From Botryllus schlosseri (taxonomy: Eukaryota): a stretch of DNA of 33,000 nucleotides. The notes under the pieces were generated by a model that searched no databases, was not told the origin of the DNA, and was given only the letters and a program-made list of their open reading frames with translations. Both the position numbers and the translations under genes were made by a program. Shown here in pieces: positions 2,207 to 25,421 of the stretch; the stretch's first letter is position 1; each line of letters begins with the position of its first letter. Location: NCBI GenBank assembly GCA_051294905.1, contig CM119386.1, positions 12,152,001 through 12,185,000 on the forward strand. Reading direction: 5' to 3'.

Positions 2207-2415
2207 ATGTTTGTACACGTAGGCCTACACGTTTTACCATTGCTCATGTTTAATAAATTCTATCTTCTTGGCGCATTCAACATCGAAACAGCTCCTGTGA
2301 CTATGCGCGGCTTCTCGTGGAGCGCCGAAAACAGTAGTGACCCATCGTTCGGAAATACTCCTGTATATTTCGGGTATTCGTTGCAAGGAAACGTGCTGGG
2401 AGGGAGATCACTCTC
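2207..2415 (+). CDS. Integrin alpha cassette A, exon 1: signal peptide and mature N-terminus
   Basis: MFVHVGLHVLPLLMFNKFYLLGA/FNIET...PVYFGYSLQG... The FNxE/D start and YFGYS motif are typical of integrin alpha N-termini. Donor TC|GTAAGT at 2416 (phase 2). Confidence 0.88.
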
Positions 2416-2554
2416 GTAAGTATTGAAGGTAGTTATCTACTGTAGTCAGGCATTTGACATTTGGCCCGGCTCTTCAGTGTCACCACACGATGTGTTTTCG
2501 TACATTGTACATGATGTTAAATATGCTAATATAATTCATGTCTTCTACCCGCAG

Positions 2555-2756
2555 ATTTGTCATTAGTGCTCCATTAAAGGCGGTCGAAGTATCCGAGATC
2601 ACCCCATTGCAAAACCGGCCCGGCGAAAGTGTGCCACACCACCCTGATACTCTTGAGAAGATCGCTGAATCAACTGGAGTCTTGTACAATTGCGGTTGGA
2701 ACTTTCTTGCGTTCAATTCGATGATTAAGTTGGCCCAAAGTGTCACAATCTCCAGA
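2555..2756 (+). CDS. Cassette A, exon 2: propeller blade 1 (3' boundary uncertain)
   Basis: Acceptor cttctacccgcag| is phase 2, matching exon 1. Reads FVISAPLK...STGVLYNCGW (cf. LxVGAP...GxxYxC). Donor is ambiguous: 2729 GTTGGC, 2757 GTCCGT or 2761 GTTATC. Confidence 0.75.
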
Positions 2757-3397
2757 GTCCGTTATCACTACATATATAGTAGTAGAGAATCTAGCTATCG
2801 CCCATACAAGAGCCTATACACGAAATTATTGATGTGATGAATACGAAAACCGAGCCATCTCGTTCGACAAAGACTCCACTGGTATATGATAGCACGTCAG
2901 ATGCAGACCCTAAATTTCTGTTCGCTGGCACGGATACAGCTGAACATGAATATATACCAGTATTCGCATATTCGTTCTTGTATTAAACGAGTATGTGTCT
3001 TTATTATATTGTATATAGAGCAGCGGTCCACAACGTGGACGATACCCCCCCCCCTCCAGTGGATAATTTTGAGGATCAAGGGGGTGAAAATACCAAAGGG
3101 GTTGACAGGGGAGCGATGAAGGGCGAAAATGTTAGGATGTCCAGTGAGATATATTTAATAAACACGGCCAAAAAATGAAAGTTATGGCGGCTTATTCTGA
3201 TTATGATACGAAAGGCCAACTCAATGGGAAGTAGACGCGGAAACCGGTTTCCCGAGCACTTAGAACCTCGAAAAAATGACATTTTTTCATAAATTCACCA
3301 GCGATCGGAGTTAAGTGAATAAATTTCCCGTTTGTATGTCCTCTTTTTCAGATCCCTAAATATGGGGGGAGTGCGAAAATTTGTTTCGAGATAGACA

Positions 3398-3433
3398 GGG
3401 GGCGATGAGTCGAAAAAGGTTAAGAAGAACATG
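3398..3433 (-). mobile_element. Degenerate terminus of a hAT/Charlie-like MITE
   Basis: GGGGGCGATGAGTCGAAAAAGGTT is nearly the reverse complement of the element start at 21906 (AACCTTTTTCGACTTATCGCCCCC) and shares GTCGAAAAAGGTT with the 18924 terminus. Related GGGCGAAAAT motifs occur near 3110-3135 and, reversed, near 23125-23165. Confidence 0.5.
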
Positions 3434-3534
3434 ATATAGAGCCTCCAGTATGAACGACCCCGCGATGGGCCCTTTGGCCCTCAGCAACCAGAGTAATATT
3501 AAAATATTTTGGCAACACTAAGTAATGACTGCAG

Positions 3535-3791
3535 CATCGGTGATATTTATGCGCCAGCAAGTAATTTATCTCACCAACATGCTAGCTATTTCGATTTACC
3601 AGGTATGCAGCTCGAAGACTTTGATCTTAATGAAAATTACACCATTGGAATAATGTACAAGTGCGGAAGACATGAGCCGATCGCGCGACAATTGCACCAA
3701 AGCGATATGGCTTTTCGAGACAGTCTTGGGACATCACTGTCGTCTGACGGTCAGGAAAACGCCACAAGTACGGACCGATTACCGACGGATC
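3535..3791 (+). pseudogene. Extra paralogous blade 1-2 exon (alternative or decayed exon 2')
   Basis: Phase-2 acceptor (ctgcag|C ATC), compatible with exon 1. Open frame IGDIYAPA...IGIMYKCGR...DSLGTSLSSDG matches the AP...GxxYxC...SLGxSL integrin motifs. Donor C|GTATGT at 3792. Confidence 0.55.
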
Positions 3792-4346
3792 GTATGTTGG
3801 TAGGATATTGACCAAATCGTGTTCATCTCATACCAATGGGCTGGCTACATCGATTACTTCTGTTTATAGGATTGTTCACGGACAAAATATCAATTCACAA
3901 TTGCGAGTCTTTGAGAATGTCATGTGTCAAAACAGCGATTACTGCCTCGCTTAAAATTGCTAATGTTGAAATTGAGATTTTCATAATCTACAGAGCTGAT
4001 GAATAATTGCAACATGTTATGGTACACGCCTTGTCGCTGTAGGTCGGGTACTCCGATATCGCTCCGCCCTCAAACTCGCCAACTCTACCTCTTACATCAG
4101 GAATCACGCCTATTCTCTCGTGATTAAGGAACAGGCTACTCTTATCTGATAATCCCGCTGTAAATCCCGCCATGTTCAAACCCAACCGTTTCTAAAAACT
4201 CCCTAATCTGTCAACAGCCACCAACTCAAGCTTCCTACTACAAAACGCAAACTCAACTCACGTTCCATACCCTCTAACCCGGTGGTTCTCAAACTTTCCG
4301 GAGTCAGGGCCTCACAGACTGTGGATTCAAAAGACCGTGGTCCCTG

Positions 4347-5922
4347 CAGAGTTGGATCAATTACATTATTACAGTTCAATTACAATTACAATTACAATTA
4401 CTTTCATGCATGTTTCAATTACATTACAATTACAATTACTCCATGCTAAAAATATCAAATTACAATTACAATTACAATTACTCCTTGCATGCTTCAATTA
4501 CATTACAATTACAATTACAATTGCTGCTGTTGAACATGTAATTGAATAATCATAAATTCAACCGTGCTCCTTGACAACCGTAGCGTCGTATTTAACAACG
4601 ATTCAAGTCTAGTTCAGATTGTGTAGTAATAAATGCGTTTATGTGCGTACACCGTACATAGTATGCTATGTAAGATGTCATTGTGACGTAATATAAGCGT
4701 GTTTTGTATGCTCGGTAATTATGGCTCACGTAATTGGAAATGTAAAATGTTATTTACCTAATTACCTATGGGTTAGGATTAAGGATAGGGTGCAGTATGT
4801 CATTGAAAAATTATTATAATATATGCACGTGTTGGATTTGCGTATATAGTATATAATTAAAGAAATAATATTATTTTTATCGAGGGACGTAGGAATTAGG
4901 ATGATGAGTAAAAACAAAACCGTGCTTTGTCAGATAAGACGTTATATAATATCCAGTGGTCTGGTTAGTTAGCCAGACGAAGTAACGATGAAGCATCGTG
5001 ATCTGAAATCGTATTGTAGATTGCCAACCCACGGATAGATGCGCAAGATGTGAGTCACGGATGAATGAATCGTCAAACGTACTGCAGAGCCGGCTAAAAG
5101 CAGCAAACTTTGTAGTCCTAGAGCTGGCGATCCATGCGTCCAAATTTGATGCATCTGGTCTTTATCGTAAGCTATTGATGTACTAATTCCGAAAATACAA
5201 AATAAAATCTTGTCAGGGCAATGTAATTACTCCAAAATAGCCGTTTAAGGCCGACTGTTCTGAAAAGTGAGAGCGCTGCAGCAGCATGACCACAACAATT
5301 ACCAATTACGCCCAGCGATTGTTCAGAACAATGCCGATTCCCATACTTTCACGACTATTTTGGGATGGTACCATTGCCTGGAAATATACTTTTATTGCGG
5401 AATCAGTGCGACACTAGCTTCCGATTAGGACCATACATATCAAATTTCGACGCTTGGATCGCCAGCTATGGGACTATCAATTCTGCTGCTTTTAGCCGGC
5501 TCAGCAGTTCGCTTCTCGGCGTATTCAATCTTGAGTCACGTGTTGCGAATCCATCCGTTGGTTAGTAATCTAAAAATTGTATACAATGGCAGCCGAGGCC
5601 AGCATAGCGGTAAAAATAAAAAAACTTCACCCGCAAGGGCGCAGTCAAGGGTTTACGCGAATGGATCCACCAAATTCCTTGTCGACATTTAAAGAGAATG
5701 CATTATAAGTCAATTATTTTATGTTGTGCTTGTCAGGTCTCAATAGCAATTTAATGTAATTAAAATTGTAATTGAGCAAAATTTTTGTCAAATTACAATT
5801 ACAATTACAATTACAATTACACAAAATAAAAATGCTTCAATTACAATTACATTACAATTACATTGAAAAATGTAATTAAGTACATTCAATTACAATTACA
5901 AATTACAATTGATCCAACTCTG
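4347..5922 (+). mobile_element. Non-autonomous hAT-like element, (CAATTA)n family, copy 1
   Basis: 16-bp TIRs CAGAGTTGGATCAATT / AATTGATCCAACTCTG. Flanks GTCCCTG and GTCCCTAG form an imperfect TSD. (CAATTA)n arrays at both ends. A second copy starts at 31431. Confidence 0.9.
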
Positions 5923-6666
5923 GTCCCTAGTCGAGTATTAGATTATCATTGACGATGACATCATAAGTGCCAACTAAGTAGTTTTTATATGACCACAAAG
6001 ATTACAGTGCTGGTTCTACGCCACATAACGATAGCTTCGTATTTTTCCACCATATATGCCCTACTTCATTCGACTCTGTGACAATGGTGTTGGGCTGTAT
6101 AGAAATGCTATTTCCGCGTACGTGCGTAGCTTGGTACAACATGTTTTGGATGCTTGATACGATCATTCGAAGTTTCAAGGCTTCCAGGTTGAGAGAAAAA
6201 CAGCGAAACTATAATTCTCATTGAATATATGGGGCCATGATAATATGTATGTTATAATTCATTATCGAAACTATTTATCGTGCCCCCTAAGAAAGTTGTG
6301 AGGACGGCAGTTGAAAACCCCTGTGAAGTAGTGCTAGTGGAGCAGTCGGTGCAGGAAAGTAGCATCTGGCAGCTCCGAATGACTCGATATTAACACAATA
6401 GATCATTTTAACATTCACTAATGTTTTTGAAATGTTTCTATACTTTTATACTCGTTTAGACATGTGCCCCCCTGAGATCTCACAATTGCACTCTCAACTA
6501 CGAAGTCGAGGGAGCGTGCTATCTGTCAAAGGTGTCTGCGTCAGGTCGCGGGGACAGTCAAACCTATCACGTGTCTTGGGAGCAGCGGTCACCGTGTCGC
6601 AATGGTAATGCATAGAAGTTGAGAAATGCCCACATACTTTATTTTTGCATCACAGCGTTTCTTTAG

Positions 6667-6901
6667 CCTCAAGACTCTCAAAAGCTATATCAAAGCCTTT
6701 TCTGACAATAACCTCAGCATACGATAGGGGTCGTTGTATAGGACGAATGCAAGTCTGTGTCAACTGCCATGGACGCAACAGGATAAGATATATAGAAGCG
6801 ATGATGTTCTGCCCAAATATTGTTTTGCGAGCTCTTATAACACTAAGACCTCTACGCACACGCAGTTCGGTATTTGTAGAACATGGCAGGAAATGTCGAG
6901 A
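6667..6901 (+). pseudogene. Cassette A, candidate exon 3 (blade 2) with an in-frame TAG
   Basis: One frame reads ...SDNNLSIR*GSL...ASLCQLPW...PKYC...QFGICRTW.... Its three Cys match VCQP..QIC..GAC of cassette B, and the only stop is TAG 6725-6727. Donor AGA|GTAAGG at 6902. Acceptor could be 6655, 6666 or 6727. Confidence 0.5.
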
Positions 6902-7824
6902 GTAAGGACTACGCTAGCAGCTTACTGAGTTTGATGTCCAATCTTTCCATTTCGCATCCCAACGGTCTATCTTTACTGGTATATTGCGCGAGTTCATTAA
7001 GAGGGTGCTACACCCAGATGTAATATACACTGTTAAAAATATTCTATGCCAAATTACTGGTCTGGTCCTGGCAGCAGTTTTACGACTCTGAGACCGGTAA
7101 ATTTGAAAAATATTTTCCCGGAAATAATATTGACCGTAATTTATTTTTACAAAGACTGACTGTTAAAATTTCTACGGAAAGTGCACACTGAGTTCAGATT
7201 CTTATGAAAAAATGAGACAAAAAGTAGTTCTTCGTAAAGTGAAAAAGAAACTGTTATATGCAGGTCGCATGGAGAATATATTAGTTACAAAAAATACAAT
7301 TTAAATATATTTGGACGCACTGCTGTATCACTTCAACTCAAAGGCCCCAGACAGACAGAGAAACCCGAATGACGATTAATAATGAGCCAAATTCCAACGT
7401 CTGCGTTTACAATTAAATCACTTGTGTTCCTTGAAGCGCATACGCCGAGTTAACGGCGGATTACGAATAAAACAAAGGGAGCATACAATTATGTCAGCTT
7501 ATTCCGTCGTTAGAGTCAGTGGTTTAGCGGTTGAATTCAAAAGACCATTCTTTGAATTTTTGCCAAAATTCCGTTGTTTGCGAGTAAAAGTGCTGCTAGA
7601 ATATATACATATGATATGATCGTGAATGTTATGTAATATACCAAAATGTATACAGCATTGATAATAAACTGTTCAAGCGAAAAGTAAGGGTGGGCGTTTT
7701 GAGGTACCGTAACATTTTGACTGATCCGGCCCGCGAGCGGTTTGAAAGTTTGAATCCGGCCAGCGACGCAAGTTGATTTTGATACCCCTGGCCTAGGACT
7801 TCGTACCTGAATAATCTTTTCCAG

Positions 7825-7873
7825 CGTGATTGCAAACTTTTCTGGCAATATTCCCTTGCATCGCACGTCCAAC
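7825..7873 (+). CDS. Cassette A, candidate exon 4 (pre-I linker)
   Basis: Acceptor aatcttttccag|; phase 0 to 1 as needed between 6901 and 9418. Reads RDCKLFWQYSLASHVQ. One extra C would give WQYSPCIAR, like B's WREISPCLQN. Confidence 0.4.
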
Positions 7874-8850
7874 GTATTTCGCACGGCACAGTGCTAGAAG
7901 CGAGAAGCGAAATGATCCCTTTCTATCACATAAGCATTCGACGTCATGATTCATAATGCCATAACGCTTCCATTTTCGTGTAGTTCAATGTCAGAAAATG
8001 TAATACATTCTTATAAGCCATAGCTTCTGTTCACCATTAAACTGTAACGAAAATAGATACGTCTTCAGAAACAGGACTGAGAGCAACTTGCCAGGTTTGA
8101 GCTCGGATACTGCTATACCTACAATATCTGCTATCAACACTTGCAATATTCTAAAGCTAAAGTTAAGCTGTGGCTTCGAAACCCTCAATATCTTACAACA
8201 ACGCATCTTGTTATTATCCAATACGAAAACATCGCGCCGATATAATATCTATCTCGGAACATTCAGCCACACGTGCTCACTGCTCAGATATGTCTGACGT
8301 CTGACGCCGCTACGTCTGGAATATGTATGACGTCATAATGTACTGTTCGCTCGAGCAGCTACGAATTCATGATCGAACAATTCATAAGGCCATTCGCAGG
8401 AAAAAGGTAAAGGACGTCTACTACTCTCGTCGCAACGGCAAAGGAGCATGGCGGCTATACGCCAGCTCCAGTGTTTCGATATAAAGTTTGCATCAAACAT
8501 GCGTTAAGGAGTCTACAATGGTGGCAGAACTGGTCCAGCAAATAATTACACAAAAGATCATACATGCAGTAAAACTACATAAGATACCGAATTCGCTTGG
8601 CATGCTACTATTGCTAGACCTTGATGTCTCAAAGGATACTATTTATAAATCGATATAAACGATGGTATCTGAAATGCCTAAATGTTCGGATACCACTCAC
8701 CGATTAGCATTCAGCACGGCCATCGATGTCGTAATATACTTGATGATTGAAACATGATGTAATGACGAAAATCACATATATATGTCCATAATAAGACCGT
8801 AAGCGTGTAAAATGATCGAATTGTAAGTGCGATAGCAATGTTGCAAATAA

Positions 8851-8980
8851 TGATTATCCAGTAAATCGCTTTTACGAATGCAAAAGTAAATCCGGAATAC
8901 TGATTATCCAGTAAATTGCTTTTACAAATCAAAAAGTAAATCTGAAATACTGGTTATCCCGTAAATTGCTTCTACGAACT
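8851..8980. repeat. 50-bp tandem repeat, about 2.6 copies
   Basis: Units start at 8851, 8901 and 8951 (TGATTATCCAGTAAAT(C/T)GCTTTTAC...). Confidence 0.9.
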
Positions 8981-9417
8981 TAATCTGCAATTTTTTTAAC
9001 CTTTAAAAACAAGTAAATTTACTTTTGACGTGTCCGTATGTTAATTTAACGGGCATTTACCGTTAATATAACTGACGGGACAAATTTACCGGTATAATTT
9101 GGGTAAATCTACGAATATTTCTAAGAGTGTATATGGAATATATATATCGCATAGACCGCGCATATAGCATAGGAAAGTCAATGAATTTCATCCAGTATCC
9201 ATGAAATCCGTTGAGATTATATTTCATCATAACTCTGGCATATGGCAAACCGGTCCATTTTCACTGCCCCGTATCATATAATTCCGTTCAGGTCAGGCAT
9301 GACACATAGCCACCACACTTCCTTATACCCGCGACATTTCCATATCTCTCTTAGTGTGTTGGTTTTTTACTCCGGTTGGCGTGCAGTGGTTACCATATGT
9401 CATTTTAACAAAATCAG

Positions 9418-9560
9418 GCTGCGCTAAATTGACGATAGACCTGATGTTTCTCGTGGACGGCTCTGGATCGATAACAAAGAGTAGATTTGAACAAGTTAAA
9501 ACCTGGATAATTACGGTCGCCGCTGCCTTCAACATCACCGGACCGGTTCAAATCGGCGTG
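9418..9560 (+). CDS. Cassette A alphaI (vWA) exon 1
   Basis: CAKLTIDLMFLVDGSGSITKSRFEQVKTWI...VQIGV with MIDAS DxSxS. cag|...|GTAAGC, phase 1 to 0, 143 nt. Confidence 0.96.
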
Positions 9561-10304
9561 GTAAGCTATCGTAAATGTGCTTGTATACTCGTGCTATCGG
9601 CGAAAACTGCATGAGGTACTCATGAGATGAGATTTGGGTTTCGGAGTGATCAAGGCGTGACAAGTTAATGGAACTTTAATCGGAGTAACACCTGAATTAC
9701 TTCGCGGTTTTCAAGTTTTCGATCGAAATTTTAGTGATTTTCAGAGTCAATTTGTCTTCCCCATTCTGTGTTGATTGGTATGTTCCCAGGATTCAGCCTG
9801 TAGTCGTAGACATAGCGAACGCCAAATATGCGATGGCATATCTGATTAAAATATTTGCGGGAGCGAATTTCAGGCATATGAATATCAAAACCCAACTACC
9901 ACGTAAATTTAGCTTTTAATAGAGTCATATTATAAATATGTTAGATAAAATCGTTACTGTTTATTGGCGATGTTACAATTACCCATCAGTGCAACGTCAA
10001 ACATATTAATTGTTATGTTTCTAATTATAAATGCTAATTAGCAATACCCGATTCCATAAACGCCTGATTTGAGCCCGGCATCCTCACGCCATATGTTTGT
10101 CGGCCATATAGTATCGAAATACCAGAGAGACTAACTCAACTGATGTCGCTCACTGCTTATCGTCACCATATCACTCGTGCCCCGCAGAATTCTAAACAAT
10201 TTGACGCGACTGAGATTACCTTTTCTTTCCTTATGGCGCCCTTCCCAATGTAGTCTGGCTATGGTCCAATAAACGAGTTCATGTTAACATTACAAACTTT
10301 TTAG

Positions 10305-10421
10305 ATGCAGTATTCCCATTATTTCGCCGGTAGGAACGGTCAGCCATACCTGAAAACCGCAATAGAACTAGGACAATTCACTAACGAGAGTGACTTCGCG
10401 GAAGCCGTGCGGGCAATCGAG
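10305..10421 (+). CDS. Cassette A alphaI exon 2
   Basis: MQYSHYFAGRNGQPYLKTAIELGQFTNESDFAEAVRAIE; ttttag|...|GTACGA, phase 0 to 0. Confidence 0.93.
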
Positions 10422-10481
10422 GTACGACAAGCAGTGTATTCGACATAAAAGGGAGTAATTGGGAAGAATGTACTTCTATAG

Positions 10482-10618
10482 TACCACGACTTCACAACCT
10501 ATACTGCTCATGCAATCATGAAAATCGTCAGAGATGATTTCAATTCCGGGCGGTCTCGCTACCCCAGAGCGAGAAGAGTGATGGTGCTCTTGACAGACGG
10601 AGGTGCTGACGATAAAGA
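10482..10618 (+). CDS. Cassette A alphaI exon 3
   Basis: YHDFTTYTAHAI...RYPRARRVMVLLTDGGADDK carries the MIDAS Thr and Asp. Follows a 60-nt intron; donor GA|GTGAGT, phase 2, 137 nt. Confidence 0.95.
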
Positions 10619-11894
10619 GTGAGTAACTCTGGTTCAACGACAGTGTAGTGCAAATGGCCGTCAGGCGAAATCGTCAAATATTTTTGTTTAATAAACAACA
10701 GCAACAACTCTGGTTAGACCAAATCAGGAAATGGTTCAATGTGGCGCTCGGTGCCCGCAAAATGTTGTGCAAGAAAATGACCGATCATATTAAAGTGAAA
10801 GCTAACGAAATCTAAACATGCAGAAATTTTTTTCTATATCTGATTCGGAATACTAAATATATTAAATGCGTGATGGTGATGCGACTTCAATTATGTCGCA
10901 GTTAACATTTCAAAATTGCTGCAATTCGAGCGATGTGGATGATGGCGATGCACATATCGTAACGTCACCTATCGACATGCCTACTGTAATGACCATGCTC
11001 GAGGTCACTGATTGCTGTCCCAATCGTTGGTATACCTAAAACCGTTAGCGATGTTGGTCCTGCCAAAGCTCCAGATCCGCACCACCGACAAGTCAACAAC
11101 TCCGATCTTCATCCATTTTATTCGTATATCTTCCGCTAGATGTCAGTATTAGAGTACCATTTGGTAAGTATCATATCTCGATTGGAAACACGAAGTCGGT
11201 ACATGTTATAGAATACGTGAATATATAACCTGAGTTGCAAATTATAAAATTGTACTATACATGATTGGTATTGCAGCGCGCCAGTGTTGGACAACTACAA
11301 AATTTTCAACTTTTCCAATTATTCTCATAATTAAATTAGAATTAGAATTTATAGCTACGCAGTTTCGTAAGTACCGAATTCACGAAAACTTAGAAATTGA
11401 ACTACATTCCGAATTTGAAAGAAAGCAAAACCGGGTTCAATCAGAGTTCATTCTAGCTGCTGTCTTTGCACTAGGCTTGGCTCGTTTCGCATTGTCTATG
11501 TGGACTTCCTGTTGTCTTTTCAGGAAAACCATAAATTAGATTATTATCAAAATTAGAGCATGGAAACATTTCACGAATTAGATCTGAATTATATTACCGG
11601 CATTTGGCTTTAAGTAGTTAATTTATCCAACGTGAATTCTCTTGTTGTTCAAGCAGTTCCCTACTGTATTTCCTTCGCGAGTCATGTCCCCCGAGAAATG
11701 TTGCTGTAATCATTAATCCGACGTAAACAATTGTAAAATACCTTTGTGCTGTTGGAAACATCGGAATCCAAAATCAGAAAGATAGGGTCCAACGTAGAGA
11801 GATTATATACAATATACATGGGACATATTCATCCAAAAGGTTCGCGTTAGCACTGAATTTCAGCGATGAATTAGGCTAGTTAAACATGTCCCAG

Positions 11895-12088
11895 GTACCT
11901 GGACGAAGCCGTACGTTTACTGAGGGATGAGCACGTAACAACGTTTGCGGTGGGTGTGGGCCGGTTCATTAATCGTCAAGAGCTACGCAGCATCGCGGGA
12001 TCACAAGACAGAGTATTTACTGTCAACAATTTCGAGCTGCTGCAACGCATCGTGAAAAGAATCCAAACCGGGATCCAGTCCCTGGAAG
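11895..12088 (+). CDS. Cassette A alphaI exon 4
   Basis: YLDEAVRLLRDEHVTTFAVGVG...ELRSIAG...RVFTVNNF...GIQSLEG. The IxxLEG end is characteristic of integrin alphaI. Phase 2 to 1. Confidence 0.96.
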
Positions 12089-12588
12089 GTACGGACCAGA
12101 ATATTGTTTTACTTCTATACCTAATAACGAATTTGTGTAAGTCCTTTGTCGATTATTCATATGATGGTCATTGTCACGTACTCCACGTATTACGAAATTT
12201 GACATATCTTAATAGATGCAAAATATCCCACGCTTCGGCGAGTTCAAATTCAGTGACATTGCTTGCATCCTGGAGAATTCAAGAATTACCTTTTAAGTCC
12301 TTTAAGAAGAGAGTGGAGACATAAAATGGTAGAATAAACATTTCACGGCGGTTAGCATGGGGTGCGACGTTTCGCTGACTATACCATGAGAACAGTAGCT
12401 TTGGAAATGGAATGTGTAATAAAAGAATGTACTAACCGCACGATGTAAACTAGTAACATTCGGCGCCACTATTTCGGTGACATCACACTAGTTAAATTAT
12501 AACGGTTGACGATTGCATGATCCTGCCTATTTCCCTGATGAATCTGGATCCGATCATAACCGTTTTCAAACAATCCTATACTTATAAG

Positions 12589-12659
12589 GGGAGAGTGACC
12601 CGAAGGCAACGAACGAACTATCTCAATGTCAAGCCGGGATCTCATCTGACATATCAAGA
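12589..12659 (+). CDS. Cassette A post-I exon (start of blade 3)
   Basis: G-ESDPKATNELSQCQAGISSDISR. CQAGISS matches the motif I recall from vertebrate integrin alpha4. Phase 1 to 0; donor GTAAGT. Confidence 0.85.
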
Positions 12660-14786
12660 GTAAGTATCGTATGAGTGAATGGTGTAACTTGTGATTGGGA
12701 TGAGTGGTGGTTTGAGAGTCTGACTGTGCGATATGCTTGCGCACGCTTACGCGAAATTCTGTACCGCGAATTTGGCGATATACATGTCGTTAACTTAAGT
12801 TGTATGAGCCGGTTATCCGCAAGCACGTACGTTATCAATAGAAGTCGATATTTCCTGAGTTCAAGAGTCGATGGATTTCTCCAGGTGAGTGCCAATGTTG
12901 GAGGTCAGGAATGCTGGCCGCATGCCTATACATAAATTATCCCGCAATGTTCGTATTGCAAACAAATCGTGTGATCCTATCAAAGAACACAATCAAATTG
13001 CACAAATGCACAATTGCACATGCACACTCAGTAAGCCCACGTGTTTCATAAAGACATGACGGATATATTTTCTAATCAATAATACACACTCGTGCTTTTA
13101 AAGAATACGCACGATACGTGGGATTCGCGTATTCGTGGAATTAACTAGCTATATCATGGTAAGGACAGCTCAAAATTAAGAGTAGTTCAAATAGGAGGTG
13201 CGTGGTACGAAACTTGTAGGTTGCTTACAAGACATGTTGCAAAAACAGGTTGATATGTCGATTTTACAGAATACACTTCGTCGATTGGTCGGCGACTCGG
13301 CGTTCAGAGAAAATATTTCTGGTACGAAAAGCTATTAGTTCACTGTCATTGCGATGGGTAGGTCATTGTTTCATTGAAACGTGCTGGAGTGAGCAAGTAC
13401 TTAGTTGACCAGTACCATTTTATGTAAATAAAATATTTTTTTAGAACTTACAAATCTCCAATCACTTTAGTTTGCTTGGTTTTATATACGCTGCCTGCCG
13501 TTTATTTATCTTTAACATTGCCAATACTGTACTGTTTGTTATTGCAATTGCTACAATGCGACTTCTATTGTCCACAATTGTGATTGCAACATCATCCTTT
13601 GTCATATTGTTTTCACCTTTGAATCAGTATGAATCCCTTTGCTGTCGATAACTCTTGATAAGACACGCCGGAAATGTGTTTGAGTCTTAAATAGTGTTCG
13701 TTCGATATATATTGTAATGAAAGCAATAATGATTAGAGGTGCAACTGGGGATAATGATCATAGTAAGAAACGAATAAAGCTAGTTAGTTGAAAATGAACT
13801 GTGTACTGACTGGATAGCGATTTATATTGTTATATGCCTAGTGTGGTCACGCACATGTACTATCTCGAAGCGGAAGTGAGACGACACAATGATAATTGCA
13901 CACTTTATGCACTTCTGGATGTGGCCGCGATTTTTCCGCCAAATCGTTGATGCAGACGGCAGACAAAAGCAAACGGCACGTTTTCTTACCTTAGTCCATT
14001 CTTAAATTTGGACGGGATACAAATCACGACTTATTCGATAGCCGCGGAACACGTTGCTGTATAACTTAATCTACGATTTCCTTTGGTAGGAATTAGGAAG
14101 CTGTGGCATATGCTGTTTTATTAAAGTTTCGTCTTTTAGTAACACTGTACAAATGAGTATAGTTCATTAGCGCCATAACTCATAATTATCAAGGTGTAGT
14201 AGGCGTGTATATTGTCAAAAATAAATCTTTCATTGTCTAAATATGTGGATAGAAGAGAAGTGTTTTAAAGGGACATATAGTTATAGATATAGTTCATTTA
14301 TTTCGAATAATACTCTACAACAGAGAGTAGATATCACCATGAACTGCACGACTGCTGGACTGGTCTAATATGAGAGGAGTTGCATAATTTTGTGCACATC
14401 AGATTTTGTCACCATATCCAATTTTACAACGGCTTTTATGCATGGAAAGAGCAAAATGATAAAATGACTGCTCTCATTGTGAGATATGGTAGCTGGAATA
14501 AAACGAGAAGGATTACCCGTGGCATGCTAAAACGGGTGGCCCTGTGGTGATAGATTGATGTTAGTAGGCCTGTTTATATATAGTGTGACAGTGTCACCTC
14601 CAGCTGCATGCCGGTAAATATTTTGTCATAGTTGGTGCACCCGAAATCCAAAATTTCAATAAAGTTAATGCCAAATAGTTCGTGACTGATTACCGTAACA
14701 CATGATCTCGTTTCATACCCGTACCTAAATAATAAAGTTTATTGCGGGCATCATCAAAGCATGAAAATTTGGTGCTTTGGGACAAC

Positions 14787-14947
14787 ATGATTTGGACAAC
14801 AGCGTTGAGTGGTTTTGCGTTGTTCTGTGTGACATCCGCTTTCAACGCCGAGACAAGGAATCGACGTGGTAATCCCGATAGTTATTCCTACAAAGAACGG
14901 ACTTATCATATATGGAAGACGCAATTCAGCAACACGGTTGGATCCAA
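14787..14947 (+). CDS. Integrin alpha cassette B, exon 1: signal peptide and mature N-terminus
   Basis: MIWTTALSGFALFCVTSA/FNAET... has the same AFNxET as cassette A. Donor AA|GTGAGG, phase 2 as in A. FGYS is degenerate (PDSYSY). Confidence 0.8.
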
Positions 14948-15827
14948 GTGAGGGAGAAGTTAAATAATGTCATTGCCGGACAACAAAGCCCCAAATCGTT
15001 TTTGTTGGGTGTCGTTATGGCCGTATTGACGTGCACGTCTTCATACGTTTTGGCTACAATAAGTTTTGCATTCGTGTTGCCGTCACCTGATTGCTTTCAC
15101 GTCAAACATTCTACTAAAACTCGATATCAAGCGAAATCTGACCTTCGTAGATTATTATTTATTAAAATCGGTTACCACAAAATCGGCCTTATTTTCCTAA
15201 AAGTTATATTTGTTAGGATGATATTCACCGATCAGTGAACAACGTCAAAGGAATCTTGACGTAATAAGTTTTCAGCTTGCGCCGCTTCACTCTCGTAAAT
15301 TTAATCGGAGAAATGTCATGCCTATATATCATGGTTGGAAAAAGTCCATCTTTTCCACAAAACGCGACGCAACATACTTGACGCAAATTTGAGCTACGAA
15401 CGTATGTACTCGGTGATCGCAGACTGCATGGTAGACATACAGTGTCCCATATTCGCCTCCTTTATCCGGAAACGGTCGTAAATCTTCGGAAGCCACTCTG
15501 TCTCTCTCGCTCAAAATTGAGAATGCGTGATCCCATTAAACCCAGGACATTGTTGGCTACCGATTGAGGCTGGGTAAATATACCCTAATATTGAACTACT
15601 GGTACAGGCAGGATACTGGTACCTTGAAAAGTATCGTAGTGTATTGATGTAGTGAAAAAACATGACTTCACAATGCAAAAGTCAAAAATGTGGCAGAGTA
15701 CGCAGGCGGCTTCCCTTCCGTGCTTTGCTATGTGCCTGTGCTTATCCGTGATAAAGTCGGCTTTGATTTCATACCGGCCCCTTTGTGTATTCTTCTGATG
15801 CTAATTAGATATCTATATTCATTTCAG

Positions 15828-15892
15828 AACTTTCCATGAGCACCCGGAGATGGCTCATAGCCTTAATCAAATAAACATCAAGTACGGTTGCG
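15828..15892 (+). CDS. Cassette B exon 2
   Basis: tattcatttcag|...|GTGAGT, phase 2 to 1. TFHEHPEMAHSLNQINIKYGC-G (YGCG vs YNCG in A). Keeps frame between exons 1 and 3. Confidence 0.72.
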
Positions 15893-17422: not shown

Positions 17423-17568
17423 GTCTTTCAAGTTTGTCTGATAATAACTCATCACCGGTATGCACGGATGGGATTCAACTGAACATTCCCACACCAACAG
17501 CAAATCTCAGCTCGTCGGGATATACTTCAGTAACTGTCGACCGACACGCTGATAAAGGCGTGACCCTG
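17423..17568 (+). CDS. Cassette B exon 3
   Basis: LSSLSDNNSSPVCTDGIQLNIPTPTANLSSSGYTSVTVDRHADKGVTL: second blade-1 Cys and an NxSxG-like motif. Phase 1 to 0; donor GTAGGT. Confidence 0.8.
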
Positions 17569-17724
17569 GTAGGTATTTAGCTATGATTTTCTGGTCGTGT
17601 ATACCGGCAACTGATGCTGAATCGCGCTGTACAACAACTATGGTGCTGCGTGGGGTACATATTCGTTTTATACCAGCGTAATATATGTCAACAATGTTAC
17701 GTTATATTGGCACGTTCTCTAGCG

Positions 17725-18924: not shown

Positions 18925-19544
18925 CTCTAGCGCACATGATATATATTGCAAAAGGTGAATAGAATACACTCATGATGTCGGTACAAGATTTCATCCCAAA
19001 AGTAAAGATTTTGGTTATGGCTACGAGTCGAATACCCCTACTGGGATGTTTACTTGGTCTTATTCAATTACCTGTTGATTTGGTATTCACGGGGTTTTCG
19101 ATTAAAATTTTCATTTACCATAGACTGATTTACTTGAAGCAGGGCCCACTTTTAGGCTTTTTAATACACCGCTTACGCGGATCAGATGGGGAGGAGTCCA
19201 GATAAACCTGTAAACTTGGGATGGATTATTCAATTCCCTTCTATCGTAGGCCTACACTTATTTGCAATATTCGGTTTGTCGGCAACATAGCGGCAACGAC
19301 GAGACTGTTCCGTCCCGTTCTTCCGTGAATTTAGTATTGGACAACTGGTTGCATGAACCGCGCAATCTACACGCAATGGAGAAAGAAGCCTGTGAAATGT
19401 ATATGTTCCTTCACAATGCACGCATGCCCATGCCAAATACATGTCAGGAAACGAGCATATTGCCAAATGCGTTGGAATACCGTAAATGCCAGCAGCAGTC
19501 TGGAATGCTAATCATGTCCACACTTCATTTTCTTTGTCGTCTAG

Positions 19545-19695
19545 GTTTGTCAGCCTCAAAGCAGACAGATTTGCGAGTCGGAGTCTTACGCGCCTGGTGC
19601 TTGTTTCCTAACCACTGTGAATATGCTTGACTCCGGAGACCACTCAGGAGGTGATCGGTCGCGAGAATGGCGAGAAATATCTCCGTGCTTGCAAA
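19545..19695 (+). CDS. Cassette B exon 4 (blade 2 and pre-I linker)
   Basis: VCQPQSRQICESESYAPGACF...WREISPCLQ, closely parallel to alphaM ACGPTVHQTCSENTYVKGLCF as I recall it. tctttgtcgtctag|...|GTATGT, phase 0 to 1. Confidence 0.92.
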
Positions 19696-20637
19696 GTATG
19701 TTCCTCCTCTGAAGCTGCGTAGAGAATAATTTCATGAAATAGAGGCTCTTGCTCTATCTGTGGTTACTAGCATTTACTAACCGGCAAGCTTTCGTCTAAC
19801 TTCAAATTTTCGCCGAGTCACAAAAACAAATAAACTTATCCACCACATTAATAGCAATACATCAATGAGACTACTGTTGTTGTTTTCCGGAGACCAATCG
19901 TGATATTCTAGGCTTTGTCTCGGAAGTAGCAATTCTCATGTCAGTTTCCCAAGCAAGCCAATCTTGTTATAGCTTTGACATCCACCATAATAGAAAGCGT
20001 ATGGGTCAACTTCAAGGATAACTTCCCATTCCTCGGCACTAATACCTTAGAACAGTGGTTCCCAACCGGGGAGGAATTCCCCCCTTGGGGGGAATTTCAC
20101 GATCTTTAGGGAGGAATTCCACTTCAGAATTGTAACGGATTTCCCAAATTGTTCATGTCCGAACTGTCATGTAGTCAACCAGTTATATCCGAACGTATGC
20201 TCCTTATGGCTGTTTGTTGTTCGCTGAAAGTATGTTCAAATGCTATTTGAAAACTCTTTTTCACATACAAATCCCTCCCCCCCTTTTTAAAACTAGTTCA
20301 GATGTGATGCAGTTCGCAAGAAAATTTTGTAGGCCAGCGACGGCCTCTCAATCAAATATATCCTAAGCGAGCAAATGTTGTGCCGAAGCTATCACAACGA
20401 GGCCTCAAGTGAAAGTATTTATCTTATATTTTCAAGTCAATATTTACAGACAGTGACAAATTATTCCAACGTCATCGATTCAAGTCAAAAAGCTCGCTAG
20501 CGTTGCTTTATTTTTAGTGAACAGCTACCCGATTGAAAAAAGACATATTAAACTTGGTGAATGTTGCCGAAACGCAATGGGTGTCCTACATTTCAATGAG
20601 CCCCAGCAGGGAACCTGATCACGTGCATGTTTTATAT

Positions 20638-21157
20638 CAGGGCTGTAACCAAATCACGAGGCTCCGAGTCACAAGTCAATCTAACTTTCATAGTTTTGAC
20701 TCGAGTAAAGTCGAGTCATTTTCAATTCACCATTGAGTCAAGTCCGAGTCTAAGTCACCGAGCAGAGGGCCGAGTCCGAGTCATGGTATTATGACTCGAG
20801 TCCGAGTCCGAGTCACACTCCGGTCAACACGATTTGGTGATATTGAATGATTCGGATTTTTGATAAACTAATTTTCCTCACTTTGAGCAGTTTCTTGCCG
20901 CATTGTCAACTACCAGGATCAATAGACAAAATTCCAATGGGGTGGTCACTTTACTGTTCTTCGAAATTACAATGAAAGGTCGGTCTTGGCCGTCTTACAG
21001 TCTCGAGTCGTATGGCTTGGTTCGAGTCATGCACAATGACTCGAGTCCACGTCGAGTCAATACCCAGATTGTCTCGAGTCGAGGCGTTTCCGTATTTTGA
21101 GAAAATGACTCGAGTTATGTCGAGTCATCAGAAAATGGTGACTCGAGTCAGACTCGA
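20638..21157 (+). mobile_element. Nested truncated element with (GAGTC/GACTC)n arrays
   Basis: Starts CAGGGCTGTAACC and has two GACTCGAGTC-rich arrays. It ends abruptly at the SINE; no matching right TIR was seen. Confidence 0.6.
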
Positions 21158-21402
21158 GCGAGGTAGTGTAATGGTTATGCATCTGGCTTCTCGGGGGTAG
21201 GCCGTGGGTCCGAACCCAGGCCGGGTAACACCGAAGACTCTAAAATTGGTATCCGCAGCTATCCTGCTAGGTGCTCAGCAATCACGGATAGCATGGAGAA
21301 ACAAAACGGGGGCGCAGATAAGATGACCTCATGGGGCCGTATCGCAGCTCCGTCGTCAAAGCATATCGATGGTGCAGGCGAAAAAGAATATCATCTCTCT
21401 CT
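21158..21402 (+). mobile_element. tRNA-derived SINE
   Basis: Pol III A box TAGTGTAATGG (21164-21174), B box GGTCCGAACCC (21207-21217), a central AAAATTGGTATCCGCAGCTATCCTGCTAGGTGCTCAGCA block, and a short (CT)n 3' end. The 3' boundary is approximate. Confidence 0.8.
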
Positions 21403-21905
21403 GATCCACCCTCCTATATATGAAAGTACCAATATTATTGGCCAAATGCATGCGCAAACTTGAGGGAAAAAATCACGAAACCAGTAAATTTATGCATACT
21501 GATTTTTCACAACAGTTTTATTAGCGATTGGTGCATGGTAAGCCGAAAACACAAATGGAAGTGTTGGGGTCTGTTGAGTCAAGCCTTCCAGAATTTGTTT
21601 GATTGGGACCAGGACCATTGTTTTGTAGGTCTACAAAGTGCTAGAAACAAACACTCGGTACAGCCCATCTTATTCTCTCAGTCAACAGATGTTGGCGCGG
21701 TAAAACTGACCTTTTTTAATCATCGGGCAGATTTATCCTAAGGGGGGAACTTTGGCTTAAATTTCGGCCAAGGGAGGCACGGGATGAAAAAGGTTGGGAA
21801 CCACTGCCTTAGAAGATCTGTTGTGTTGAAGTGTCTTTTTTAATCCTCGCTTTCTTGAAGTTCTTGAGCAATGAGCAATTAAAACCGTGAAAATATGTTC
21901 TACTA

Positions 21906-21980
21906 CAGTGGTTCCCAACCTTTTTCGACTTATCGCCCCCTTATCAAGCTCGACACAAATCTTCGCCCATCCCCCAGGAA
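21906..21980 (+). mobile_element. Solo left end of a hAT/Charlie-like MITE
   Basis: CAGTGGTTCCCAACCTTTTTCGACTTATCGCCCCC has the same TIR as 20053; no partner TIR was found downstream. Confidence 0.6.
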
Positions 21981-23383
21981 TATTTACGGATTTGAAAAAG
22001 AGGACATATAGCCTATATACGGGAAATGTATTTATTAACTCTGTTCAGTGGTGAATTGACTAAAAAATGTCATTTATCATAGAAGGTGCTCGGAAAACCA
22101 GTTTCGCGTCTACTTTCCGTTGAGTTGACCATTTTTTAGTAAACTTTCGCGTCATATGCAGAATAAGCCGTCTTCACGTGCATTTTTTCGCAGTGGTAAT
22201 AAATAGGGAGAGATGTGGTACCGATGAGACACTGGGACACTACAATTGTATGCTGAAAGAATCTTTCCTCTCATGCAAAAAAACTTCGACCTGCATGAGT
22301 TACGGGGTCTCTGACAGATGTTTGCTGTCTTGGGGGTGTAAAACATATTTCGATCGACGCAACCATTTTTCTTTGTAACATTCAACACGAACAAACCAGC
22401 AATTATGCAAACCAGCAATGTGAAGTGTATGGCTTGTACCAGGCTATATAACGGCACATATATTCTATTCAATACCATCCATGGGTGGACTTTTTTCAAT
22501 TCCAATACATAACTTATAGAGTTGAGGCCAATGATACCATGGCCAAATCAAGCAAAATAGTTGGACTGACTAGTCATTCAACAACAGAAACACGCCTACA
22601 CACACTAACGCTGTACTTGATATTTACCTGTGATCTTTTACAGCTCTAATGAGCTATTTTGAAGTAAAAATCTCGATTTACGGGTAATATGTATGTACCC
22701 TCAAATTTTTAAGTTTGCGCTTAAATCGAAAGTGATCTCATCACAACATTTGAGGTATTATTTATTCTATTTTCTCGACGGTTGCGACCAAACATTCTTT
22801 TTTTGGCTTGCTGTAGCTTACATCATATTACACAGCAAGAAAATTTGGAACATTTAAGTATGTCTCAAATTTCCCCAGATCTTGTTCATTCCGACCCACC
22901 GGGTGAGGACCGATGATACGTTCGAGCAACAAATTTTGAACGTTCATAAATATATTTTCAATTGGTGGATATTCATGTAAAAATATCCTATAGGTAGAGC
23001 TTGTATAAAAGTGCTGAGCCAGTAAAAGATCTGCTCTTATCAGCTGAAGATTGGGGGGCGAGAGATCATTTTGCAATTCTTGATCCATAAGTACCACATC
23101 TCCCCTATATATCACAGTGTGTTCTAAAATTTTCGCCCCCCATCGCCCCCCCCCCAGTCGCCCTCATTCCATTGCTATCTGCATTTCGTGAGCATCGAGC
23201 CCACTTTGATATTTGATATGCTTTGGTTAGGTCGAAAGGTACCGGCACTCCTAAACTGATGTAAATCACGTCATGTGAATTCTCAATGTAAAATTGCAGC
23301 ATGTTAAGAGAAAGCTGAATTAACCACATGCATTGATAATGAGTATGTCTTGACGCAAGTTAAGCATACATGTATACATTTAG

Positions 23384-23526
23384 ATTGTGAGCCGTCGCTT
23401 GTTGACTTGGCATTTGTCATTGACGGATCCTCATCAGTAACTGCGGGAAATTTCAGACGGGTAATCGCCTGGATGCAGGGAATTTCAAGAGATTTTGATA
23501 TTTCCGGGCCTTATAGAATCGCTGTC
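23384..23526 (+). CDS. Cassette B alphaI (vWA) exon 1
   Basis: CEPSLVDLAFVIDGSSSVTAGNFRRVIAWM...YRIAV; 143 nt, phase 1 to 0, same size and phase as in A. Confidence 0.96.
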
Positions 23527-23658
23527 GTGAGTACTCTTCATATATGAAGATTGTGGAGTTGATGCAGGCTACTTTGTCTACCTAGTTTCGAAGCGAATGA
23601 CGCTGGGAGAAAGATGCGGATATTGCGAAATTTATTTCGATTTGTATTATGTCTGCAG

Positions 23659-23754
23659 GTTAAATTTTCGAGACCAAAATTTACGAAAGTCGAGATACAG
23701 CTTGGCCAATACACCGATCAGGAAGCTTTAGCCACTGCAATCGGCAACATTAAG
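23659..23754 (+). CDS. Cassette B alphaI exon 2
   Basis: VKFSRPKFTKVEIQLGQYTDQEALATAIGNIK; ctgcag|...|GTAGGT, phase 0 to 0. Confidence 0.93.
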
Positions 23755-24110
23755 GTAGGTTCAGGCCCTACAGTTATGTAGGTGCGTGTCAGCCAGCCTA
23801 GACGATAGGCTTCACTATTGTCGGGTGAATACATTGGGAACACAGACTGCGGCTATACATTCACTGTAAATGTAAACTATTTTGTCATTCAGATACCGGA
23901 TTCATAGCGTTATTTACAAGGTTACGCCCTCGTTGGTTGTAGAAGTAATTTTTGCGCCTCATTATACCTCGCCTTCCTTAACTGTTCTGGTCGCGGCCAG
24001 GAAGTCCGCGCCCGAAATGTTCCGTGAAATCCACTCATTAAACAGGGCTGGGGGTGCCTGTGTTGCATGCTAATTTCGTAAAACGAATATTCACAATTCA
24101 CATGTTACAG

Positions 24111-24247
24111 TACACACCCGGTGGCTCTGCCGCCAGCAACGCTATCCAATTAACCGTCAATCAAGTATTTCGAGGGAAGAATGGTAGATATCCAAAAGCG
24201 AAAAGAATAATGATATTCTTGGCCGATGGAAAATCATCAGATTCACG
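24111..24247 (+). CDS. Cassette B alphaI exon 3
   Basis: YTPGGSAASNAI...GRYPKAKRIMIFLADGKSSDS; 137 nt as in A; donor CG|GTAAGT. Confidence 0.95.
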
Positions 24248-24448
24248 GTAAGTGAATAAGTTATTTATGATTTTTATAACACTTCTCGATTGAAAAAGCG
24301 AATTTTACTTAAATTAATGAACTGCTTGTAGGGAATTTTTGTGATCACTGTTCGAATTTTTGTTATGACAATTTGATTGCAGTTTTTCACATTCTCAATT
24401 AATAGCATGCATTGCATCCAATGCGCTAATAACGATGTTGCGGTTTAG

Positions 24449-24639
24449 GAGGCTAGCGCGTGTCACGAATAATGCGCGCGCGAACAAAATCCAAGCCTTC
24501 GCTGTTGGCATCGCTGAATACGAGATGGAGGAATTGCTGATGATTGCCGGAGACCCGAGTCGGGTTTTTACCGAGAAGAACTTCGAGAATTTGTCAAATA
24601 CAATAACAAAACTGCAAGTGCGAATACGCGCGCTAGAAG
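24449..24639 (+). CDS. Cassette B alphaI exon 4
   Basis: RLARVTNNARANKIQAFAVGIA...ELLMIAGDPSRVFTEKNF...RIRALEG; phase 2 to 1. Confidence 0.96.
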
Positions 24640-25335
24640 GTAGGATTTTGTTTGGAATGTATGGAGTGGATGTCATGCGTTTGTTCCCACATTCATCGCC
24701 GAAAGACAAATTGCATAAAAAGGGTAACAATCGATTGCAGCTGCGGCACTGATTATGAACATATGGATTTTATTCTGCTCGTGATCCCGGAACCCTCCTA
24801 AATCATCCTCGTATTTTGTAATTTCGCATTGTTACGGAGTGTGACATTGTGCCGCATCAATGCCGTCTGAGATGACGATGGCGCAGCTCAGGCAAGTCAG
24901 CAGGAGCGCAAATCGCAAGCGTAATGACCATTGTTAGTAACTTATTGAGCATCGAGCATGAGCACTCACAATCTCACTCTCGCAGAAGAGGGCATTTTTG
25001 CGTCACAATCCGAACGCCGTAACAATGCAAAATTCCAGGATGATTTTGCAAAGTTCCAGGATCGCGACAGCTTTCGATTAACACCCGTTTCATCAAATTT
25101 AGCGCTCAGCAAGCCAGACTAAATATTAATTGCCTTTGGTCGAATGGTGAGAATGACGTAACCCTGTCGCAATGAGCCGTGCTATTTGCTTGTGCCCACA
25201 CCACTGCAGGACACTATGGTCAAGGTATAGATTGCTAACCTACGGTTCGTAATCCTTATAATCAGAGTCAACGCAGAGCAAACATAAACGTCGACCGGAA
25301 CACCGTAATTGATGATGCCGTATATATATTTACAG

Positions 25336-25421
25336 GAGGTAACACATTCAGTCAAAACCTAACCAACGCAGGCCTGGACCACTGTGGTATCGGAAGTTCC
25401 GTCGAGTTCGATAGTAAAGAG
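25336..25421 (+). CDS. Cassette B post-I exon (start of blade 3)
   Basis: G-GNTFSQNLTNAGLDHCGIGSSVEFDSKE shares LxxCxxGxS with 12589-12659. Phase 1 to 0; donor GTAAGG. Confidence 0.87.

Follow-up and report, generated by a model that had tools for sequence, protein, structure and literature searches.

The DNA considered here is a stretch of 33,000 nucleotides from Botryllus schlosseri (C16:12152001-12185000 in a 495.5-Mb assembly), hereafter the window, whose plus strand carries two 5' portions of an integrin alpha gene, termed cassettes A and B. The sequence read comprised 183 kb around the window (C16:12062001-12245000), 80 kb downstream (12404001-12484000) and contigs from related species; negative window coordinates denote positions upstream of the window. 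A and B are the last two units of a plus-strand array of at least seven cassettes (W1, W2, X, Y, Z, A and B), recognised by exon-by-exon homology, which occupies about 121 kb (C16:12056545-12177421) with a unit spacing of 12-25 kb. Each cassette consists of a signal peptide, blades 1-2 of the propeller, an alphaI (VWA) ligand-binding domain and a short last exon. On the same strand, 296 kb beyond B, lies an intact 3' half of an integrin alpha gene, called G, and we tentatively propose that the cassettes could be alternative 5' modules of this single exon set.

Cassette A is made up of the following exons, each given with its evidence in brackets (ORF, open reading frame; MIDAS, metal-ion-dependent adhesion site).

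2207-2415, plus strand: exon 1 of A, with the ATG, the signal peptide and the start of blade 1, 'AFNIETAP...YFGYSLQGNV' (ORF, motifs, homologous exons and splice model)
2555-2739, plus strand: exon 2 of A, blade 1/2, 'FVISAPL...GVLYNC', its donor position being uncertain (motifs and splice model)
3603-3799, plus strand: exon 3 of A, blade 2, 'DSLGTSLSSDG...' (five-member exon family and splice model)
6460-6604, plus strand: exon 4 of A, a Cys-rich loop with an RGD at 6547-6555 (homologues in all cassettes and in gene C)
9418-9560, plus strand: alphaI exon 1 of A, with the MIDAS 'DGSGS'; an alternative acceptor would give a start at 9355 (Pfam VWA)
10305-10421, plus strand: alphaI exon 2 of A (homology and splice model)
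10482-10618, plus strand: alphaI exon 3 of A, 'RRVMVLLTDG' (homology and splice model)
11895-12088, plus strand: alphaI exon 4 of A, with an internal-ligand-like 'SLEG' at its end and a phase-1 donor (homology, reading of the DNA and the ortholog P0153)
12589-12659, plus strand: last exon of A, '(G)ESDPKATNELSQCQAGISSDISR', 71 nt, with the phase-0 donor GTAAGT at 12660 (reading of the DNA)

Joined at frame-compatible GT-AG sites, these nine exons give an uninterrupted ORF of 466 amino acids, the weakest point of the model being the junction between exons 2 and 3. The ATG is followed by a hydrophobic leader and then by 'AFNIET', the VWA domain is matched by Pfam PF00092 at 9354-9614 (E 5e-8), and the alphaI region, as read from the DNA, ends with '...IQSLEG' before its phase-1 donor at 12089. 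The last exon is preceded by the acceptor cttataAG and finishes on a whole codon before GTAAGT. In comparisons among cassettes and with other genes, the last alphaI exon is referred to as exon 7, the short last exon as exon 8 and the exon that would follow it as exon 9.

Cassette B begins 2.1 kb beyond A (gap at 12660-14786) and is read as follows.

14787-14948, plus strand: ORF of exon 1 of B, with the ATG, the signal peptide and 'AFNAETRN...', its exact donor not being fixed (motif and leader)
17470-17577, plus strand: blade-2 exon of B, 'SSSGYTSVTVDRHADKGVTLVG', approximate bounds (motif reading only)
19545-19690, plus strand: Cys-loop exon of B, approximate bounds (homology to A 6460-6612 and to gene C)
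23380-23532, plus strand: alphaI exon 1 of B, with the MIDAS 'DGSSS' (Pfam VWA and homology)
23650-23760, plus strand: alphaI exon 2 of B, approximate bounds (weak homology and colinearity)
24096-24245, plus strand: alphaI exon 3 of B, approximate bounds (Pfam VWA and homology)
24447-24639, plus strand: alphaI exon 4 of B, with 'RALEG' at its end and a phase-1 donor (Pfam VWA and reading of the DNA)
25336-25421, plus strand: last exon of B, '(G)GNTFSQNLTNAGLDHCGIGSSVEFDSKE', 86 nt, with the phase-0 donor GTAAGG at 25422 (reading of the DNA)

B is colinear with A and far more diverged, with an identity of 38-47% between their alphaI exons, and its 5' part is less firm, as exons 1-3 rest on motifs only. 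Its VWA domain is matched by Pfam PF00092 at 23350-23547, 24054-24251 and 24435-24752 (E 1e-5 to 4e-6), and its last exon follows the acceptor atttacAG and finishes on a whole codon before GTAAGG. A plus-strand ORF, 'KYFVIVGAPEIQNF' (14600-14660), which lies 160 nt upstream of the ATG of B, resembles the 'VGAP' motif of blade 2 and is devoid of partner exons, so that it is either a chance resemblance or a relic. The candidacy of this ORF ('YFVIVGAPE' at 14625) as the true blade-2 exon of B was rejected, since the exon of B with the ATG and 'AFNAET' lies downstream of it.

In the array as a whole, six of the seven cassettes (W1, W2, Y, Z, A and B) look intact. Exons with an ATG and a leader are located at C16:12056545, 12080433, 12111819, 12130777 and 12154228 and at window position 14787; an exon 1 homologous to that of A was found in Y, W2 and Z, the exon 3 family has five members on the plus strand, and homologues of the Cys-rich loop exon occur in all cassettes and in gene C, a complete integrin gene on the opposite strand. 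The seventh cassette, X, gives the impression of being degenerate, as its alphaI exon 3 is divided between two reading frames and no exons 7-8 can be recognised. X lies at window positions of about -52000 to -44400, and its similarity to W1 at the DNA level extends beyond the position of exon 8. As a separate observation, the Cys-rich loop exon before the alphaI domain contains the tripeptide RGD in A ('SGRGDSQT'), in W1 ('SGRGDGRR', window position about -85.8 kb) and in a cassette of the related contig ctg14216l ('PGRGDSET', about 6.6 kb into the examined stretch); the presence of this integrin-recognition motif within the head of an integrin alpha is curious.

The identity of these units is indicated by several features of an integrin alpha chain with an inserted alphaI domain, namely the MIDAS DxSxS, the blade motifs upstream of the alphaI domain and the strand 'Q.AGISSD' downstream of it, and the cassette exons follow each other in the same order as in the complete paralogue C. 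For the C-terminal end of the alphaI domain, an internal-ligand glutamate is described within the motif I/LEGT (PMC12422189). The cassettes read 'SLEG|E' (A), 'ALEG|G' (B) and 'LLEG' (the others), so that the glutamate is present and the fourth residue is not T.

The short last exon is the best-conserved part of W1, W2, Y, Z and A, in which it reads '...NGL.QCQAGISSD[IM]S.', and in several cassettes it carries '...CAGGCNGGNATNTCATC...'. The last exon of A is conserved in W1, W2, Y and Z, in a minus-strand cassette (H) near G and in two relatives. All six intact units have a good acceptor before this exon and a GT in phase 0 after it: the donors are GTATGT in W1, GTAGAA in W2 and in Y, GTGAGC in Z, and GTAAGT and GTAAGG in A and B, with only the GT for H; in both relatives the translation of the last exon likewise continues into a valine codon (GTN). 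Beyond the donors, the intron sequence is unalignable between lineages. In every intact unit except W1, translation through the last donor meets a stop codon after 4-11 codons, and in W1 it stays open for at least 15. A common terminal exon downstream of the last exons was not found, as the search returned only pairwise similarity in all frames, of a non-coding or repeat character. The preliminary description of the window had reported two units, each with its own ATG, signal peptide, blades 1-2, alphaI domain and last exon, with strongly diverged alphaI domains and homologous phase-0 donors at 12660 and 25422; the VWA matches, the exon identities and the reading of the DNA bear out all of this, and the search upstream which it recommended raised the number of units from two to seven.

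The same description had noted that the short interval between A and B, as well as the plus strand after B, lacks the rest of the gene, and the wider reading agrees. No plus-strand exon for blades 3-7, leg or transmembrane segment follows B in the window or occurs in the 183 kb, over which none of the 3'-half exons of C and G gave a plus-strand match, even at E 0.1, and no plus-strand Ca2+-loop or GAP motif is present beyond blades 1-2; in other words, no cassette has a 3' half of its own there. A genome-wide search with the conserved blade-5/6 exon gave five matches on the chromosome arm, which correspond to four minus-strand genes (C, D, E and F), each with a MIDAS exon at the proper distance, and to the plus-strand G. 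Pfam Integrin_A_Ig_1, applied genome-wide, is too insensitive for mapping leg exons. The cassettes alone are not complete integrin alpha genes, as blades 3-7, leg, transmembrane segment and tail are absent on their strand except in G.

G extends over C16:12473067-12483500. Its first exon, at C16:12473067 on the plus strand, is a blade-3 exon in phase 0 that lies behind 'ttgtttattcAG' and opens with 'NGRLYLGAVGAYDWSG...', and is thus the downstream exon with a phase-0 acceptor that had been predicted from the window. It is followed by compactly spaced FG-GAP exons with DxDxDG loops, of which G has three, by exons for the thigh, calf-1 and calf-2 (Integrin_A_Ig_1/2/3), by a transmembrane exon ('...LVLILWK') and by a tail exon, 'LGFFKSKY...', with a stop codon; Pfam PF01839, PF08441, PF20805 and PF20806 are matched, and G is intact throughout. 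The 49 kb upstream of G contain no cassette exons on the plus strand. The distance to G is 296 kb from B, about 309 kb from A, about 397 kb from the last exon of W1 and 417 kb from its first exon. The closest solved relatives of the G blade exon are human alpha4, alpha6 and alphaV, not the vertebrate alphaI subunits. The junction that would result from splicing, '...AGISSDISR|NGRLYLGAVGAYDWSG', gives a proper reading and is presumably colinear with human alpha2, 'GFSADYS...LMLGAVGAFGWSG'.

Concerning the expression of G, small sequencing runs of the same organism (8-26 million assembled letters) contain 14-23% of the sampled words of its 9-kb body, and a run of 135 million letters from the same study contains 28%. 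In the small runs this share is 5-10 times that expected from random DNA coverage and close to the exon fraction of G, on which grounds G is probably transcribed, the type of run being only guessed.

The cassettes also bear the marks of protein-coding evolution. Over about 400 aligned codons, the ratio of nonsynonymous to synonymous substitution rates (dN/dS) is 0.48 for W2-Y (dS 0.24), 0.30 for W2-Z and 0.26 for Y-Z (dS about 0.9-1.0 for both), and in more distant pairs synonymous sites are saturated, with a proportion of nonsynonymous differences (pN) of 0.28-0.44. In the duplicate pair W2/Y the exons are 85-96% identical and the introns 50-75%, with gaps. Moreover, exon 7 of A shares 46 of 52 residues with a genomic ORF of a close relative (P0153, Logan SRR25569784), and the read-through of the following intron is much less alike. 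It follows that the cassettes have long been duplicated as modules devoid of a 3' half and have evolved as coding sequence throughout, which argues against the earlier alternative of one partial duplication with A dead; we consider that alternative unlikely, as the cassettes form a family under coding constraint.

Such constraint in the lack of a nearby 3' half could instead be that of stand-alone genes, each cassette encoding a secreted truncated protein of roughly 470 amino acids, by read-through or by a non-conserved terminal exon, that would serve as a soluble binder or decoy. The ATG and signal peptide of each cassette, the gene-like spacing of the units and the early stops after the last exon of all intact cassettes except W1 would fit this possibility. 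Nevertheless, the GT, together with a consensus-like donor, is kept in every lineage in front of an intron that has been randomised, although termination by read-through has no need of it; no terminal exon is shared, and G, intact and probably expressed, would be left with no 5' end. Two blades of a seven-blade propeller are, in general, not expected to fold alone. On balance we regard stand-alone genes as an unlikely explanation of the array.

The organisation of the locus in related species, reconstructed from ORFs called on genomic contigs, is informative on the relationship between cassettes and G. In ERZ21736675 ctg14216l (716 kb), an A-like cassette at roughly 186.4-191.9 kb comprises the Cys-loop exon, the MIDAS exon, alphaI exons (one of them 77% identical to that of W1), exon 7 and a last exon '...HCEAGISINSGE|GT', which is followed by an intron of 5.8 kb, by an exon 64% identical to the first exon of G (exon 9) and by further G-like exons; a minus-strand cassette is found upstream, comparable to H at the present locus. 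The corresponding elements of JGI24158J21664_10002533 are exon 7 (401-589), a last exon '...MQCEAGISSTIQK|GT' (near 2030) and the G-like exon 9 (12675). The intron between cassette and G-like exon, 5.8 kb or 10.6 kb long, is the longest of the gene. Since the two relatives hold both parts in a single gene, the A-like cassettes and the G-type 3' half are, judged by these sequences, two halves of one gene lineage. Within the long intron of ctg14216l, an ORF of 274 amino acids with an HTH_animal (transposase-like) domain was noticed on the opposite strand (14176-15000 in the examined stretch), and the intron seems to serve as a landing site for insertions.

The shared use of G as a constant region, with the cassettes as alternative 5' modules spliced to it, is the best single explanation of these data, although we hold it with less than even confidence. 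It draws on the conserved donors with no private acceptors, on the constrained units lacking a 3' half, on the intact and probably expressed G and on the one-gene state in relatives. According to this model, A and B would belong to a series of tandem 5' modules that serve as alternatives in an alphaI-type integrin alpha gene. Each module would supply its own start codon, signal peptide, blades 1-2 and diverged alphaI domain, and would stop at the exon before blade 3, at the conserved phase-0 donor. The modules would be completed by splicing to the single set of 3' exons, from C16:12473067 onward on the plus strand, so that splicing would connect the exon-8 donor of A, of B and of the neighbouring cassettes with the first exon of G across 296-417 kb. 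G would provide blades 3-7, thigh, calf-1, calf-2, the transmembrane segment and the GFFKS tail, and the outcome would be a set of receptors with different heads on one stalk.

The hallmarks of a variable-cassette system that are present include tandem 5' units with their own start codons and same-phase donors with no private 3' exons. The candidate constant exons of G fit in strand, order, phase and orphan state, but lie 296-417 kb away, with genes of the opposite strand in between. The variable-cassette and constant-region idea put forward in the preliminary description is partly supported. The array, the lack of 3' halves, the common donor phase, the existence of an orphan G and the one-gene state in relatives speak in its favour; the distance, the antisense genes and the zero exon reads over window 9300-15299 in four RNA-seq runs speak against it.

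Several observations weigh against the splicing of cassettes to G. First, the intron implied, which measures 296 kb in the case of B and about 309 kb in that of A, contains one opposite-strand cassette and four complete opposite-strand integrin genes, and the same intron measures only 5.8-10.6 kb in the two relatives. Second, transcripts have failed to appear. In four bulk RNA-seq runs (X11, X13, X15 and X16; about 5.9 Gb read), examined for one stretch, window 9300-15299, with no positive control, zero reads fell on exons 5-9 of the nine-exon model of A (the four alphaI exons and the last exon) or on exon 1 of B, and the mapped reads were few, partial and repeat-like; A and B are therefore silent or very low only as far as these four samples are concerned. 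The small RNA-like runs that contain the exons of G do not contain window 9300-15299, with its exons of A and B. Joined cassette-G transcripts were not seen in the data searched: no transcript-derived protein was found across the junction of exons 8 and 9, as protein searches with the first exon of G, exon 7 of W2 and the blade-5/6 exon of G gave genomic ORFs only, and the genome contains no retrocopy of the cassette-G junction. A search of representative proteins with the blade-5/6 exon of gene C returned bacterial multi-repeat FG-GAP proteins only and no integrin references. Third, one cassette of the array (X) is degenerate. Finally, the contigs of the relatives show one adjacent cassette and no array, and a tree of alphaI exons, in which A, B, H and the cassette of the relative are not resolved, leaves undecided whether the array descends from the own cassette of G.

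Some of these observations would be expected if the two halves had been uncoupled, that is, if the cassettes once stood beside the 3' exons of G and a rearrangement then inserted the 296-kb minus-strand block with C-F and H, leaving the cassettes, and perhaps G, as unjoined relics that have not yet decayed and whose transcripts, if any, would be non-productive. The arrangement in relatives, where 5.8-10.6 kb separate a cassette from the G-like exon 9 and another cassette, on the minus strand, lies just upstream, is matched here by H (minus) next to G (plus) with the plus-strand cassette missing; the lack of RNA reads on A and B, the degeneration of X and the relaxed dN/dS (0.48) of the youngest pair point in the same direction. 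However, open frames, canonical splice sites and key motifs are preserved both in six cassettes and in G, which appears to be transcribed. In addition, the cassettes were duplicated as 3'-less units under constraint at distances ranging from a dS of 0.24 to saturation, which implies that the 3'-less state is old and not recent. A simple inversion does not produce the present order either: inversion in one step, considered as an origin of the layout, was rejected because it would flip H relative to G, yet the orientation H (minus), G (plus) is that of the relative. A broken gene is a rather doubtful account of the locus, albeit one to be taken seriously.

The neighbours of the array on the opposite strand deserve a separate description. 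Between the array and G lie the complete integrin genes C, D, E and F and the cassette H. The 3' end of C falls within the window, as follows.

26425-26565, minus strand: cytoplasmic tail exon of C, 'AGFFENNY...', with the stop codon at 26422-26424 (ORF and motifs)
26876-27046, minus strand: transmembrane exon of C, within an ORF, '...VIVAAAVGFLVICLLTLILWK' (ORF and motifs)
27605-30406, minus strand: calf-2 exons of C, ORFs 27605-27748, 30028-30204 and 30272-30406 (homology to the calf exons of G and ORF map)

C is a complete alphaI integrin gene, whose ATG exon lies beyond the window, at coordinate 48598 of the same numbering, and is followed by blades 1-2, alphaI, Ca2+-binding blades and legs; its transmembrane helix reads '...LTLILWK'. 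B and C are convergent, and only 1 kb separates the last donor of B from the stop codon of C, so that the 3' untranslated region of C probably overlaps the sequence just downstream of B. H, the eighth cassette and the nearest neighbour of G, lies on the minus strand at C16:12423600-12429594 and has the conserved last exon and GT donor of the array; no 3' half of its own was found in the 19.6 kb that separate it from the complete gene F, for which H could act as an alternative head in cis. Elsewhere in the window, two copies of a repeat, 94-97% identical, occupy 4331-5850 and 31415-33000. More than 190 near-identical copies exist genome-wide and, given this copy number, the internal inverted segments and the microsatellite-like stretches coding for (NY)n, the repeat is a young transposable element family.

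The proximity of complete paralogues raises the question of trans-splicing, in which the cassette donors would be joined in trans to the exon-9 acceptor of G or of a paralogue on the opposite strand (C or F, for example). Tunicates possess a spliced-leader trans-splicing machinery. Donors conserved with no cis acceptor nearby, paralogues close at hand with phase-0 exon-9 acceptors, the 3' end of C just beyond B, and the reported occurrence of alphaI integrins in tunicates and vertebrates only (PMC4237329, PMC12422189) are compatible with such a process. Nevertheless, the process is rare and cis-splicing to G is simpler, and we give trans-splicing very little weight.

An assembly artefact, in which either the cassette block or the C-H block has been put in the wrong place or orientation and the cassettes really abut G, appears highly improbable as well. 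It would reconcile the locus with the order in relatives (minus-strand cassette, plus-strand cassette, plus-strand 3' half), the array fitting between H and G. However, no runs of N occur in the 183 kb or across the junction between B and C, the last exon of B and the tail exon of C are 1 kb apart in continuous sequence, and moving a block of 121 kb needs three breakpoints.

Integrin alpha chains are generally taken to follow the rule of one gene for one receptor, with diversity arising from duplication of whole genes and from small alternative exons, and a literature search found no report of a cassette/constant layout for them. If the proposed splicing takes place, the choice of a head from an array on a common stalk would be a new way to diversify adhesion or innate-immune receptors. 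Even if the halves are not joined, the locus would still be unusual, with at least seven half-genes duplicated and constrained with no other half, beside an intact orphan half. An array of half-genes of this kind calls for an explanation, be it splicing over a very long range, trans-splicing, the secretion of truncated alphaI proteins or a recent break.

Loci expressed by trans-splicing offer one term of comparison. In Drosophila mod(mdg4) and lola and in C. elegans eri-6/7, parts of a gene stand apart, some of them on opposite strands, and keep conserved splice sites, as do the halves described here. In mod(mdg4), however, it is the 5' part that is common and the 3' parts that vary, and in the present locus a trans-spliced product exists only as a proposal.

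A closer term of comparison is provided by the tunicate Ciona, in which Ci-alpha5-8 are tandemly duplicated and complete integrin alpha genes with an alphaI (alphaA) domain and 26-27 exons (PMC1145181). As in the cassettes, four exons encode the alphaI domain, which is inserted after blade 2 and before blade 3, local clusters have arisen by tandem duplication, and a short exon of 57-68 nt (exon 9 in Ciona) occupies a position comparable to that of the last cassette exon (PMC1145181). The complete genes C-F described above belong to this ordinary type. In contrast, the seven units of the array break off at the short exon behind the alphaI domain, and G begins immediately beyond that exon.

The clustered protocadherins and UGT1A are the systems which the locus would resemble most in its design. 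In these loci, variable first exons with their own promoters are cis-spliced to shared constant exons. The array has in common with them tandem and diverged 5' units with their own start codon, a conserved 5' splice site and no private 3' exons, as well as one candidate set of 3' exons located downstream in the same orientation. It differs from them in that its units are nine-exon modules of roughly 10 kb instead of a single large exon, and in that the candidate constant region is 296-417 kb off, with opposite-strand paralogues in between and the joining unobserved here. An integrin locus of the protocadherin type, in which six or more promoter-bearing modules, each with a different alphaI domain, would be spliced onto one propeller-leg-transmembrane-tail part over roughly 300-400 kb, is accordingly offered as a possibility that falls somewhat short of even chances, and its setting would probably be tunicate immunity or adhesion. 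If correct, it would place the architecture of the protocadherins and UGT1A in an unrelated gene family.

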